A stretch of 64,000 nucleotides of DNA from Thalia democratica (taxonomy: Eukaryota). This document shows, piece after piece, positions 21,109-57,167 of this stretch. The notes under the pieces are model-generated. The model worked only from the letters and a program-made list of their open reading frames with translations, ran no database searches and was not told where the DNA came from. Numbering within the stretch: position 1 is the first letter of the stretch; each line of letters starts with the position of its first letter. The DNA lies in NCBI GenBank assembly GCA_965202585.1, contig CBDBBG010000278.1, positions 1 to 64,000 on the forward strand, written 5' to 3'. The position numbers and the translations under genes are program-made.

Positions 21109-24100
21109 ATGAACGTAAAGTGCACGCTAGTTTTACTAGCATTCTGCGTTAGTAACGGTAAGTGAGATAAAGTAGATTTTGTACAAAAAAACTTAACCAA
21201 TTATATATTCAAGTATATTTAATTAGTTTAATTTTTTGTATTTATTATCAAATTTAATACTTGCAATTTTATACTAAAAGGATAAACTAGAATAAGACAA
21301 AATATAGTTACTATTATAAAGTTATAAAAAGTATTAGAAGAAATTCTGTGTCGAAAAAGCTGAAAATTTTTTATCAAATTTGTATTACGATATAATAGTT
21401 GTACAATCAATTGATAAACAAGTAGCTCTAAAAATTTGATAGAAAGAACTTCATAATAAAGCTTTTTAAATAATATGACTCGATAAATGATGTGTAGAAA
21501 TACTGCGAAAACAAACACAAAAAATTAGCGCAAATTATTCTAAAATTTTATTTTTGAATAAACTTAACTGCTTTTCTCGGTATTATATAAGTAGTTATTA
21601 TTTAGTAGAAAACATTTAAGCTCATATATACATTTTTATTTTATATTTTGAAGCTTTTGAATTTTTTAACTATTGTTAAATAACTTTAATGTAAAAAACT
21701 TAAAAAACATGTTAGATGTTTTAATTAGTGATGTACCGGACTCACTATCCGGGTCCGGGTCCGGCCGGATATTGCCATTTTTGTCTGATATCCGGATCCG
21801 GCCGGATTCTAATTTGAAAAAAAAGTCCGGATCCGGTTCCGGCCGGATTCTAATTTGAAAAAAAAGTCCGGATCCGGGTCCGGCCGGATCTCTGTTAGGA
21901 TCCGGCCGGACCCGGATCTAGTTAGTAGAAAAGAGCATACTGAAAAGTATTTTTTTCAAAAACAAACCCTGTGTAAATTAATAAGAGTCATTTTCGTCAG
22001 TTAAAATTAAACACCTACCGTGATTGGCTCATTTTGTACACGTGACTAATTTACATTTGTTTACATTTAAACTATGAAATAAACATTTAAGAAATGCAAC
22101 TCTTTACGTTTGTTGTAAAATTGAAAACTTTAGAATGAATACTTGCATTATTTATTGTTTAATATTGAGCTCAGAGAATATTTAGAGTTAATACGGTTGA
22201 ATGTACTAGCCAATGAGAATCATATTACGAAAAGTTTCAAACTAAATACTGATGCAACAAAACATCAGAACATGACAGGCAGTTTATATGTAAGCAGTTA
22301 GTTAGTTTGGTGTGCAGCTTGAAGCAACAAAATATCTTAAATTTTTTGTGAAATTTTGTGATAAGTGAATATTTCAACTGAAGTTTAATGTTTTAATATT
22401 TAAGCCAGGTTTATAGTTTAATAGTTTATTAAAAATTTTACAGTTTCATGTTTACTAAAAGTTTTATTTAGTTTTTAGTTTATTGTTTTAAGTATTTTGA
22501 TATAGATTTAAATAGATTCCAGCTTTTAAAGTGTTACCAAAGTAATTAATAATTTTGTATATGCTAGTATTTCTTATTGTGTTTTATATAAAAGATTCAT
22601 TACTCAAAACTTTCGTGTCTGATTATAGAAAGTAATCTCAGTTAGAATTTAGTATTTGTTAGATATTAATTAAATAAGGTAGGATTTAATTATGATGGGT
22701 AGTACTAATAAGTTAAGTGTACCACAATCAGTCCACAACTTTACTACCAAATTGTCAACCTTTGCTAGCTGTTCTACTGATTGTTAGATTAAAGTAATTT
22801 TTTCAGATTTAAAAACCTCATTCTGACTCAGGCTTGTTTATACTAACTCTAGATAGTTTTACTGACTTAAACAGTGGCAACCCTGCTAGTTTGAAAAATT
22901 TTGGGAATGTTAGAAAATCTTGGACTGCCTCAGGCTAGTTTAGTTTTTTACAAAAGCTCAGGCTAGTTTTATGATTTTGTAAAAAACGCAGGCTAGTTTT
23001 CTTTTAAATTTTGAATGAGTTTGAGCTAATCCAGTTTTCAATATTTGGTAATTTTCTAGTGTAATTTGTTCAAGAATTTGATTTCAGATTTTTAATTGTA
23101 AATAAAACCTAAATTTGTAAACCTTGTGGGTAGCTGTTCTACTTATTATTAGATTAAAGTTTTTTTTTTCAGTTTTTAAAAACCTCATTCTGACTCAGGC
23201 TAGTTTATACTAGTGATTTACCGGACTCACTATCCGGGTCCGGCCGGATATTGCCATTTTTGTCTGATATCCGGATCCGGCCGGATTCTAATTTGAAAAA
23301 AAAGTCCGGATCCGGTTCCGGCCGGATTCTAATTTGAAAAAAAAGTCCGGGTCCGGTTCCGGCCGGATTCTAACTTGAAAAAAAAGTCCGGATCCGGGTC
23401 CGGCCGGATTCTAACTTGAAAAAAAAGTCCGGATCCGGGTCCGGCCGGACCCGAAATTGTGGGTCCGTAACATCACTAGTTTTAATAGCCTTAAAGCTTT
23501 TTGAATAATAAAATTATACCAGAAACATGCTAATGAAAAATCACAAAATAAACTTTTATGTTTTTTTGCAGCTAATATAAATTTAAATATTTGTCTACTA
23601 AATTTAACACACTGATATCCAAAAGCTTAATTGTAAATAAGCCAATCATTTAATAAAAACACAAATGTTTGTTCACGTTTTGATTGACTATTATTTTAAA
23701 TTTTTATTAGTTGTGTTCTTAATTTTTGTAAACAAGTGATAAGAGCTTAAACTTTTTAATAAACTAAATAAGCAAGAAACTTTTTAATGATAATAACAGA
23801 TACAAGTTTCAAATATAGTTAATTTTGTTATAGGGTATTCTTAATGAGTTAAACAGTAGTTTTTTTAAATAGTTAGAAACTAATAATTTAGTAATTAAAG
23901 TAAATTATAGCTACACTTTTTGATTTTTATCATTTTTAGCTACAATTTTGAAAACTAATTAAAATAACGAAAATAAATCGATATGGAAAAACATCTTGAA
24001 ATTTTGAAAACAATTTAAACAAAACAATTAAAAAAGACTAATAAACAATAAATTACTGAAATATACTTTTTGAAAACAGAGAGAACTTCAAGCCTTCAAA

Positions 24101-57100: not shown

Positions 57101-57167
57101 CTTGAAAATTTTATAGTATGTTATATAACTTGATTAACTCATACTTATTTTACAGAGTGCTGCATAA
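21109..57167 (+). CDS. Giant multi-C-type-lectin type I membrane receptor (mannose-receptor-like, 57 coding exons, 2497 aa): SP - 5 CTLD - FA58C - FA58C[kringle] - LCCL - 7 CTLD (one containing FN2) - trefoil - TM - tail
   Basis: Hand-assembled exons, all GT-AG with consistent phase, total 7494 nt: 21109-21157, 24427-24599, 25066-25190, 25598-25714, 26193-26324, 29116-29227, 29470-29555, 30258-30370, 31096-31231, 31455-31627, 31888-32028, 32409-32567, 32938-33141, 33470-33505, 33564-33634, 34015-34123, 34493-34639, 34970-35153, 35864-35987, 36288-36404, 37089-37226, 37892-38033, 38437-38550, 38835-38952, 39356-39492, 39807-39883, 40107-40226, 40589-40751, 41222-41340, 41725-41858, 42030-42070, 42458-42643, 42973-43091, 43648-43813, 44130-44257, 44682-44823, 45334-45522, 45978-46132, 46454-46667, 47080-47179, 47434-47569, 47880-47982, 48240-48337, 48835-48931, 49235-49393, 49708-49820, 50823-50966, 51503-51658, 51865-51958, 52323-52438, 52738-52865, 53145-53325, 53990-54164, 54578-54745, 55151-55300, 56060-56313, 57156-57167. 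Signal peptide [19 protein letters not shown]. The 49-nt first exon and 12-nt last exon are the least certain. Confidence 0.9.
21726..23478. mobile_element. 1753-bp non-autonomous hAT-type element in intron 1 of the lectin receptor, with an internal second copy of its left end
   Basis: Termini tagtgatgtaccggac (21726) and gtccgtaacatcacta (23478) are inverted repeats. The perfect 8-bp TSD gttttaat lies at 21718-21725 and 23479-23486. Subterminal arrays of ccggatccgg(t/g)tccggccggattctaatttgaaaaaaaagt occur at 21745-21910 and again at 23211-23460. No transposase ORF recognised. Confidence 0.85.
24427..35153 (+). other. Exons encoding CTLD1-5 of the receptor
   Basis: Five repeats of C-x2-3-W..CY/CW..W..A...C....L.SI..WIG..W.D...C...W...C.....IC. 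CTLD1 (GEPNN..WND) and CTLD5 (DEPNN..WND) carry the Ca2+/sugar motifs. Confidence 0.9.
35864..38033 (+). other. Exons encoding discoidin (FA58C) domain 1
   Basis: [100 protein letters not shown] follows the FA58C consensus. Confidence 0.9.
36425..36625. mobile_element. Small palindromic MITE-like insertion just after a donor site
   Basis: cgttcaaaattcaccc and atcaaaatccaccc on the left are mirrored by gggtgaattttgaacg and gggtggattttgat on the right, with an internal agggttagggg. Ends and TSD are uncertain. Confidence 0.6.
38437..40751 (+). other. Exons encoding discoidin (FA58C) domain 2, split by a kringle
   Basis: [25 protein letters not shown] precedes the kringle exons. [56 protein letters not shown] follows them. 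Confidence 0.85.
38835..39492 (+). other. Kringle domain (2 exons, flanked by phase-1 introns)
   Basis: [61 protein letters not shown] contains the YRG, CQ.W, CRNPD and PWCYT kringle motifs. Confidence 0.95.
41222..42070 (+). other. LCCL domain exons
   Basis: [44 protein letters not shown] matches the LCCL motifs CPAGC, VYG, S.IC.AAIH.G and Y.GS..NGV.S. Confidence 0.9.
42458..54745 (+). other. Exons encoding CTLD6-12 of the receptor
   Basis: Seven further CTLD repeats. EPN+WND in CTLD6, 8, 9 and 12; EPS+WND in CTLD10; QPS in CTLD11; FN2 insertion in CTLD7. Confidence 0.9.
45334..45480 (+). other. Fibronectin type II domain nested inside CTLD7
   Basis: [36 protein letters not shown] shows the FN2 pattern C.FPF.Y.G..Y..C..WCS.T.D...W..C. 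Confidence 0.9.
55151..55300 (+). other. Trefoil (P-type) domain exon
   Basis: [44 protein letters not shown] has the six-cysteine trefoil pattern R..CG...IT...C...GCCW..CF.P in a symmetric phase-1 exon. Confidence 0.85.
55841..55905. mobile_element. Degenerate hAT/MITE-like terminus
   Basis: cagagttttccaaagtggacaacatcgccctttaggcg resembles CAGTG..CCCAAAGTGGG-type hAT ends, and aaggggc recurs three times nearby. No partner TIR found. Confidence 0.3.
56060..56313 (+). other. Transmembrane and cytoplasmic-tail exon of the receptor
   Basis: [28 protein letters not shown] hydrophobic helix, then a Ser/Thr-rich tail ending SGFSNPNTD, spliced to SAA* at 57156-57167. Confidence 0.9.

Follow-up and report, generated by a model that had tools for sequence, protein, structure and literature searches.

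Among the known relatives of the gene reported here is the vertebrate mannose receptor (MR) family (MRC1, MRC2, PLA2R1 and LY75; group VI of the proteins with C-type lectin-like domains, CTLDs), whose members are of type I membrane topology and in which an N-terminal CysR (ricin B-type) domain, represented by PF00652 in vertebrate MRC1 entries, is followed by an FN2 domain and then by 8-10 CTLDs in one uninterrupted array. Another layout was predicted with GenScan for a Fugu gene, DEC-205-FUSE, which has five N-terminal and ten C-terminal CTLDs (seven in a later assembly) with LCCL and FA58C domains between them, and for which neither a human orthologue nor cDNA support was found (Zelensky and Gready, 2004, BMC Genomics 5:51, PMC514892). 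In the literature that we searched, the name DEC-205-FUSE occurs outside that paper only once, in an article on an unrelated subject. Here we describe a lectin receptor gene of the tunicate Thalia democratica that lies on the forward strand at positions 21109-57167 of a 64,000-nucleotide stretch of genomic DNA (the window), which comprises positions 1-64000 of a small unplaced contig, C287. The protein that it encodes has the type I topology and the FN2 domain in common with the MR family, but it is without the CysR domain, carries its FN2 inside CTLD7 (between Lectin_C positions 71 and 77) rather than between CysR and CTLD1, and has 12 CTLDs in two arrays; beyond what the MR family possesses, it has five extra N-terminal CTLDs, two discoidin (FA58C) domains, a kringle, an LCCL and a trefoil. 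CTLD clusters of five and seven, with FA58C-1, FA58C-2 and LCCL between them at aa 753-1270, are the arrangement of the DEC-205-FUSE type. We consider it probable that this is one intact gene for a type I membrane glycoprotein of an ancient, MR-like multi-CTLD family, serving as an endocytic scavenging or pattern-recognition receptor of the cell surface.

The gene was rebuilt independently of earlier coordinates. Stop-free segments were listed across the AT-rich window (22-32% GC), in which the forward strand from about 24.4 to 56.4 kb holds a dense run of short segments with CTLD, discoidin, kringle, LCCL, FN2 and trefoil signatures. Exons were chained by dynamic programming: a codon log-odds model was trained on the stop-free segments, all open exons bounded by AG...GT were enumerated, and the best phase-consistent chain was kept and then curated by comparison with a second genomic copy of the locus, which a search of the 802-Mb assembly had located on contig C4. 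The final model comprises 57 coding exons (median exon 132 nt, median intron 382 nt) with 2,498 codons plus a stop, from an ATG at 21109 to a TAA at 57165-57167. These are exactly the start and stop given in the original prediction; its product length of 2,497 aa was nearly right, the rebuilt model being one residue longer, at 2,498 aa. All 56 introns are phase-compatible and there are zero in-frame stops, both in the window and in the C4 copy.

Domains were assigned by running Pfam on single-exon translations of the window, with three orthologues (P0175, described below, P0235 and P0036) as proxies for tests on whole-protein domains; all coordinates that follow are on the forward strand. A signal peptide is followed by the N-terminal block of five CTLDs (24444-35076), identified by Lectin_C matches on exon pieces: CTLD1 at 24444-26205, CTLD2 at 26230-30357, CTLD3 at 31101-31979, CTLD4 at 32420-33134 and CTLD5 at 33584-35076. 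Next come discoidin 1 (35143-38026; aa 753-927, four exons) and discoidin 2 (38033-40723), whose N part (aa 930-968) and C part (aa 1052-1163) enclose the kringle (38837-39488; aa 969-1051, six Cys). On single exons, the F5_F8_type_C matches reached 24.7 and 14 bits, below the gathering cut-off of 28.2; discoidin 1 of P0175 matches positions 3-126 of the 127 in this profile. Both kringle exons (38835-38952 and 39356-39492) match Kringle, at 4.9e-8 and 1.2e-13. The LCCL domain (40739-42069; aa 1169-1270, four Cys; Pfam 2.4e-10), matched at 41719-41859 in a genome scan with PF03815, is followed by the C-terminal block of seven CTLDs (42466-54738), delimited by Pfam, by motifs and by collinearity with MRC1: CTLD6 at 42466-43734, CTLD7 at 43789-46030, CTLD8 at 46085-47479, CTLD9 at 47549-49314, CTLD10 at 49369-51595, CTLD11 at 51650-53223 and CTLD12 at 53275-54738. 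CTLD7 is itself in two parts, with the FN2 domain between them (45345-45476, within exon 45334-45522; aa 1522-1565, four Cys; Pfam fn2 3e-11, positions 1-42 of 42). After CTLD12 the protein continues with a P-type trefoil (55159-55287, within the single exon 55151-55300; six Cys; Pfam 2.4e-8, positions 1-43 of 43), a transmembrane helix (56113-56184), which was recognized in the translation and aligns with that of all homologues, and a cytoplasmic tail of 46 aa (56185-57167) that contains G-F-S-N-P and ends in S-A-A. Lectin_C was matched by single-exon pieces of CTLD1-10 and CTLD12; the four short, divergent exons of CTLD11 gave no Pfam match by themselves in the single-exon scan, and the segments of three orthologues that align with CTLD11 match the full profile (positions 2-107 of 107, E 3e-10 to 5e-15). 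The very short pieces of the discoidin-2 N part and of the CTLD7 exons likewise gave no Pfam match, and orthologue segments were used in their place.

The whole protein thus contains a single signal peptide and a single transmembrane segment, and between its two CTLD arrays lie some 540 aa that make up the discoidins, the kringle and the LCCL. Every element of the architecture first proposed (12 CTLDs split 5+7, a discoidin-discoidin-LCCL centre, a kringle, an FN2 and a membrane-proximal trefoil) was recovered on the exons and in the orthologues. So was the proposed distinction from the vertebrate MR and DEC-205, namely the 5+7 blocks of 12 CTLDs, the central cassette and the lack of a ricin domain: The mature protein opens with CTLD1 at aa 23, and orthologues scanned whole contained no Ricin_B. 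The assembly also holds five further LCCL-encoding sites (C1:53874321-53874668, C6:55131546, C2:23395700, C8:51870798 and C5:4252777), four of which share the exon boundary of the window gene (profile positions about 43-89); these may be paralogues of the receptor family, for example a SUEL-type member such as occurs in Clavelina.

The second copy, at C4:71672883-71711118, was compared with the window from 70 kb of C4 sequence. Collinearity extends into the flanks, with window positions 5037-64000 matching C4:71655082-71717632 at 75-96% identity, and in the final model every exon aligns without gaps with its C4 counterpart and retains its AG/GT boundaries. Exons are 95.5% identical and introns about 85%. 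Over a coding sequence of 7.5 kb, both copies are free of stops and frameshifts and have kept all their splice sites, and they differ at 338 of 7,485 sites and 28 of 2,495 residues, corresponding to a synonymous divergence (dS) of 0.23, a nonsynonymous divergence (dN) of 0.0056 and a dN/dS of 0.024. Silent change predominates in every module, as in LCCL (13 nt and 0 aa differences), FN2 (6 nt, 0 aa), CTLD11 (15 nt, 0 aa) and the kringle (15 nt, 4 aa, all of them conservative). The gene is intact and under strong purifying selection over its whole reading frame, which also speaks against a mis-joined chain of genes. Contig C287 represents either an unpurged haplotype that is very divergent or the product of a recent segmental duplication, at least 59 kb long. 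Its small size, its unplaced status and the collinearity with C4 that extends through the flanks could be taken to mean that the copy in the window has no function of its own, being a duplicate in decay or an artefact of assembly in the form of an unpurged haplotig, but we find this doubtful in view of the two undamaged reading frames and their dN/dS; the dS is high for alleles, and a haplotig would merely mean a second functional allele, with the description of the gene left standing.

Two of the domains are inserted into other domains. The kringle interrupts a loop of discoidin 2, at a position kept in six tunicate proteins, and the segment that follows the kringle in P0175 matches F5_F8_type_C positions 24-126 of 127 (E 2e-16). 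An AlphaFold model of the orthologous 237-aa stretch of discoidin 2 plus kringle, made with a six-sequence alignment, can be superposed on factor VIII C2 over its whole length (149 of 159 residues, root-mean-square deviation 2.3 A, Z 18.9, model range 1-237), and because the superposition takes in the entire C2 domain, the parts of discoidin 2 on either side of the kringle must belong to a single discoidin fold. Confidence in this model is moderate (mean pLDDT 66.5), with values of 74-92 in the C part of the discoidin and of 39-65 in the kringle, which is itself poorly modelled. In CTLD7 the long-loop region, normally the site of the EPN motif, is taken up by the FN2 domain, and CTLD7 of the orthologue matches Lectin_C positions 5-71 ahead of FN2 and 77-107 behind it. 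Both nested insertions are real. The two kringle exons are of phase 1-1, the classic sign of exon insertion into an intron. Being skippable together with the frame preserved, they might make the kringle an optional cassette, such that the main isoform has a plain second discoidin; and in Styela LOC120344668 (P0178) a different domain, DUF7495, occupies residues about 990-1074 in place of the kringle, so that the discoidin-2 loop has accepted two unrelated inserts. We nevertheless regard an optional kringle as quite unlikely, given that the orthologous mRNA contig and every RefSeq model contain the domain, and that the few changes in it between the window and C4 bear the mark of purifying selection. 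As for FN2, its exon also codes for a segment of CTLD7, and FN2 could therefore not be dropped alone, since skipping would break CTLD7.

To find relatives, we searched library-wide with one CTLD exon, which returned many multi-CTLD giants, and aligned the model to them; Styela LOC120344952 was then used as bait. This Styela clava protein ('lymphocyte antigen 75-like', 2,497 aa) matches the window protein end to end at 43% identity, and Pfam finds in it 12 Lectin_C, two F5_F8_type_C, Kringle, LCCL, fn2 and Trefoil domains. End-to-end matches were also obtained with P0175, from a marine JGI metatranscriptome (57% identity, 2,496 aa), and with Ciona intestinalis LOC100186027 (XP_078489850 / XP_026694467; 48%, 2,494-2,495 aa), and further matches with Ciona LOC100175664 (46% over about 2,240 aa), Clavelina lepadiformis LOC143458877 (46%, about 1,800 aa), Styela LOC120344806 (45%, about 1,860 aa) and Styela LOC120344668 (36%, about 2,390 aa). 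P0175 and the predictions Ciona LOC100186027, Styela LOC120344952 and LOC120344806 and Clavelina LOC143458877 have the set and order of Pfam domains, the nested kringle and FN2 positions, the transmembrane segment and the G-F-[DE]-N-P type of tail seen in the window, and differ from the window protein in sequence and species only. Across eight tunicate proteins, the nested kringle, the nested FN2, the trefoil ahead of the transmembrane segment and the tail motif define a subfamily of the Ciona LOC100186027 type, into which the window protein fits. Judged by these sequence comparisons, the window gene is the T. democratica orthologue of the unnamed Ciona, Styela and Clavelina predictions, which are automatic and functionally uncharacterised, and whose accessions are not mentioned in the literature searched.

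These orthologues also bear on whether the 36-kb span is a single gene. Tandem CTLD genes are common in marine invertebrates, no RNA from T. democratica is on record, and it could be argued that the model joins on paper what are really at least two adjacent genes, for example one with 5 CTLDs, one for discoidin/LCCL and one for a 7-CTLD receptor, the more so as Zelensky and Gready pointed out that their own Fugu model was without cDNA support. This can hardly be right, however: In both copies the 56 introns stay phase-compatible and the frame is free of stops, with 23% of synonymous sites differing between the two; the protein has only the one signal peptide and the one transmembrane segment; and the models of three other tunicates and of an eel are collinear with it end to end. 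Moreover, the P0175 contig (7,690 nt) contains a single ORF of 2,496 aa along with an AATAAA signal and an A-rich 3' end, so in this related tunicate the whole architecture resides on one mRNA, which contradicts a division into separate transcripts and agrees with the single gene of the original prediction.

Outside the tunicates, the same core occurs in fish and amphioxus. The Anguilla 'macrophage mannose receptor 1' (XP_035247102, 2,160 aa) has 12 CTLDs arranged 5+7 around SUEL-FA58C-LCCL and is collinear with the window protein in both CTLD blocks (aa 7-733 against eel 5-723 at 32% identity, and aa 1059-2363 against eel 866-2089 at 33.5%); amphioxus LOC118411324 and LOC118411508 consist of CTLDs, a SUEL lectin domain, FA58C, LCCL and further CTLDs, one amphioxus member having 16 CTLDs. 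Unlike the window protein, these fish and amphioxus members have a SUEL/rhamnose-lectin domain, a single discoidin (two in amphioxus) and no kringle, FN2 or trefoil. Among more distant mosaics, vertebrate DCBLD1/2 are CUB-LCCL-FA58C proteins and Limulus factor C combines LCCL with a CTLD; like the window protein they are extracellular mosaics in which LCCL is accompanied by a discoidin or a CTLD, but by literature statement, which is the basis of this comparison, they have no CTLD arrays, another domain order and no detectable orthology. It had been supposed that no protein of this architecture was described, which proves to be overstated. That no member has been characterised functionally is borne out, all known members being uncharacterised in this respect; as to description, the core was published for Fugu and the full layout is present in tunicate RefSeq predictions. 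The protein is therefore not of a new kind, and an architecture search of databases would have found equivalents. What appears undescribed in print are the tunicate elaborations (the additional discoidin into which a kringle is inserted, the FN2 within CTLD7 and the trefoil next to the membrane): The literature searched yielded nothing relevant on the five-domain combination, and a 2026 paper in Molecular Biology and Evolution (MBE) names tunicate mannose receptors only generically. A Ciona robusta 'MR' (XP_026691626, LOC100175664) has been treated as a C-type lectin pattern-recognition receptor, its mRNA falling after zymosan in juveniles as measured by quantitative reverse-transcription PCR, with the architecture not described (Front Immunol 2023;14:1217077, PMC10433773). 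It is a paralogue of the window gene from the same tunicate clade, not its orthologue.

The relation to the vertebrate MR was resolved at the level of single domains. The best alignment with bat MRC1 pairs window aa 1280-2360 with MRC1 366-1358 (31.5% identity over 1,107 columns, 451 bits), and an alignment shifted by one domain scores 261 bits; from this difference, CTLD6-12 correspond in register to MR CTLD2-8. The EPN and WND pairs of MRC1 at 743/764 and 889/909, in CTLD4 and CTLD5, are the only such pairs in the block and align exactly with CTLD8 and CTLD9. MR CTLD4 and CTLD5 carry the calcium-dependent sugar binding of the MR. A maximum-likelihood tree, computed quickly from the 7-CTLD block, joins both copies of the gene to P0175 (SH-aLRT 100) inside a tunicate clade (99); together with the FA58C-LCCL proteins of fish and amphioxus, this forms a chordate clade (87), and vertebrate MRC1 lies outside the invertebrate and lower-chordate clade. 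These results may be read as evidence for a chordate-wide family of 12-CTLD receptors that was lost in tetrapods, whose 7-CTLD block, transmembrane segment and FxN tail are the same ancient module as MR CTLD2-8, and whose tunicate branch fixed the kringle-in-discoidin and FN2-in-CTLD insertions and kept them in all ascidian orders sampled; we think this scenario could go either way.

The sugar-site motifs are distributed unevenly over the CTLDs. In the window protein, EPN and WND occur together in CTLD1, 5, 6, 8, 9 and 12 (in the N-terminal block, CTLD1 and CTLD5 only) and EPS with WND in CTLD10, for a total of seven CTLDs, and EPN/WND is not present in CTLD2, 3, 4, 7 and 11. Across eight tunicate proteins, CTLD1, 5, 9 and 12 nearly always retain EPN+WND, CTLD6, 8 and 10 mostly do so (some having EPS, EPD or QPD), and CTLD2, 3, 4, 7 and 11 never have it; the pattern is position-specific and kept among tunicate paralogues. 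By the motifs that characterize them, the window protein would count among the calcium-dependent C-type lectins of mannose type. In the cytoplasmic tail, the tunicate consensus G-F-[DE]-N-P is represented in the window by G-F-S-N-P, with Ser in place of Asp/Glu, and aligns with the homologous FDNALY of amphioxus and a crinoid, FDNP[AV]Y of the annelid Owenia and FENTLY/FDNAIY of vertebrate MRC1; against these MR sequences, the window reads F-S-N-P-N-T, with the Tyr replaced, on a tail of 46 aa that follows a single transmembrane segment. The C-termini of tunicate, amphioxus and annelid multi-CTLD receptors are mostly [S/T]-x-A (SNA, SIA, TPA, STA, SQA, TSA, TTA, TNA or SKA in P0175, P0235, P0036, P0260, P0178, P0002, P0025, P0016, P0180 and P0182; SAA at 57156-57164 in the window), an ending that resembles a PDZ ligand and that vertebrate MRC1 does not have.

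From this domain set and the conserved EPN/WND CTLDs, a candidate multi-ligand lectin receptor, as originally suggested, remains plausible. The subfamily would be chordate-specific, built from 5+7 CTLDs around a discoidin/LCCL cassette as in Fugu DEC-205-FUSE, and tunicates would have added to this core the second discoidin with its nested kringle, the FN2 in CTLD7 and the juxtamembrane trefoil. Placed on the cell surface, the receptor would bind mannose-, N-acetylglucosamine- or fucose-type glycans in a calcium-dependent, multivalent fashion through CTLD1, 5, 6, 8, 9 and 12 and the EPS-bearing CTLD10, and its non-lectin modules may extend the range of ligands, for instance to lipid or glycan surfaces, to collagen-like ligands and to mucin-type glycans. 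The tail, through its F-x-N-P motif, would then route it into the endocytic pathway, consistent with a scavenging or pattern-recognition receptor in a filter feeder. Ligand classes, endocytosis and tissue of expression are here suggested by homology, whereas gene structure, domains, constraint, orthology and MR collinearity were observed directly.

Several points weigh against this interpretation. The Tyr of the FxNxxY signal of MR and LDLR type is absent from the window tail (FSNPNT) and from most tunicate members, and the endocytic function may consequently be weaker than homology suggests. A search of public runs for T. democratica returned two runs from one study, presumably of DNA and neither recorded as RNA, and the spliced transcript described here is accordingly predicted from comparison of genomic sequences. 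The window copy, being on an unplaced contig, may be a divergent haplotype of the C4 gene instead of a separate locus; support for the chordate clade is moderate, at 87 in a quick tree; and the sole published data on the family are the fall in mRNA of the Ciona paralogue, with binding and localisation for the family as a whole extrapolated from homologues. The missing Tyr, together with the PDZ-like [S/T]-x-A end, which suggests scaffolding, would also suit a receptor concerned mainly with adhesion, with anchoring to matrix or mucus or with signalling as a co-receptor, in which discoidin, kringle, FN2 and trefoil tether cells to the tunic, the mucus net or the matrix; the best structural matches of the discoidin-2 model are the neuropilin b1 discoidin and factor VIII C2, and five of the 12 CTLDs are without sugar-site residues in every tunicate member. 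Such a role seems to us rather improbable as the principal one, because the block homologous to MR takes in its sugar-competent pair of CTLDs, because the other seven CTLDs keep EPN/EPS and WND, and because the F-[DE]-N-P core of the tail is kept in about eight tunicate proteins.

The exon map underlying these comparisons is as follows, all on the forward strand. Exons 1-8 are at 21109-21157, 24427-24599, 25066-25190, 25598-25714, 26193-26324, 29116-29227, 29470-29555 and 30258-30370; exons 9-16 at 31096-31231, 31455-31627, 31888-32028, 32409-32567, 32938-33141, 33470-33505, 33564-33634 and 34015-34123; exons 17-24 at 34493-34639, 34970-35153, 35864-35987, 36288-36404, 37089-37226, 37892-38033, 38437-38550 and 38835-38952; exons 25-32 at 39356-39492, 39807-39883, 40107-40226, 40589-40751, 41222-41340, 41725-41858, 42030-42070 and 42458-42643; exons 33-40 at 42973-43091, 43648-43813, 44130-44257, 44682-44823, 45334-45522, 45978-46132, 46454-46667 and 47080-47179; exons 41-48 at 47434-47569, 47880-47985, 48240-48337, 48835-48931, 49235-49393, 49708-49820, 50823-50966 and 51503-51658; and exons 49-57 at 51865-51958, 52323-52438, 52738-52865, 53145-53325, 53990-54164, 54578-54745, 55151-55300, 56060-56313 and 57156-57167. 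Exon 1 contains the ATG and the signal peptide, has a GTAAGT donor in phase 1, is 96% conserved in the C4 copy, and yields a product that aligns with the N-termini of the orthologues. The last exon is a micro-exon of three codons plus the stop, with one synonymous change in C4. A longer tail, made by reading through the donor at 56313, was rejected because this micro-exon with its acceptor and frame is kept in C4 and yields the [S/T]-x-A end of the family. Also discarded were four pseudo-exons of the first automatic chain in the repeat-rich first intron, which the C4 copy does not support; a 15-nt pseudo-exon at 33893-33907, which has no C4 counterpart; another pseudo-exon, of 45 nt, at 49921-49965, whose C4 counterpart is frameshifted; and, at 32908, a weak acceptor for which C4 has AA, the true site being at 32938.

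The introns themselves contain several kinds of repeated sequence. Copies of exon-intron junctions, 88-91% identical, lie inside adjacent introns (35748-35788 and 35856-35896, 49934-49978 and 49789-49833, 33893-33907 and 34015-34029, and 50550-50690 and 50823 onward), where they make decoy splice sites and in-frame pseudo-exons; similar copies are present at the C4 locus. The 9-mer TGACGTCAC, which contains a palindrome and resembles a cAMP response element (CRE), occurs five times in the window against 0.12 expected, at 32396-32404, 34765-34773, 34957-34965 and 42447-42455 on the forward strand and at 43818-43826 on the reverse. Three of these copies lie 3-5 nt upstream of acceptor AGs (those of the exons from 32409, 34970 and 42458) and one lies 5 nt past the donor at 43813, and the 9-mer could be an element that marks intron ends or what is left of a repeat that generated introns. 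Two intronic repeats of about 80-95 bp (41532-41613 and 38965-39059) recur at dozens of sites on all large contigs with 85-95% identity, and look like dispersed repeats of the miniature inverted-repeat transposable element (MITE) type. Intron 1 (3.3 kb) is filled by tandem or dispersed repeats, including two blocks (21670-22000 and 23194-23505) that are 93-96% identical and have long spurious open frames (SGSGSGRI... and PDSNLKKK...).

No living animals are more closely related to vertebrates than the tunicates, which depend on innate recognition as they filter sea water. The family to which the window gene belongs is the counterpart nearest to the macrophage mannose receptor among lower chordates, and it is large, strongly conserved and entirely uncharacterised. 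New from the window are a cleanly resolved structure of 57 exons and a kringle that lies within a discoidin on phase 1-1 exons, and the second, diverged copy demonstrates purifying selection on every module. The family ties an overlooked fish prediction of 2004 to amphioxus and tunicate proteins, and it offers concrete experimental handles in the form of predicted sugar-binding CTLDs and a tail motif to mutate. If it is indeed a chordate-wide family that tetrapods lost, it would constitute a sister lineage, so far unstudied, from which the assembly of the vertebrate MR family could be learned, and its nested insertions would be natural cases of CTLD and discoidin loops acting as scaffolds for whole inserted domains.

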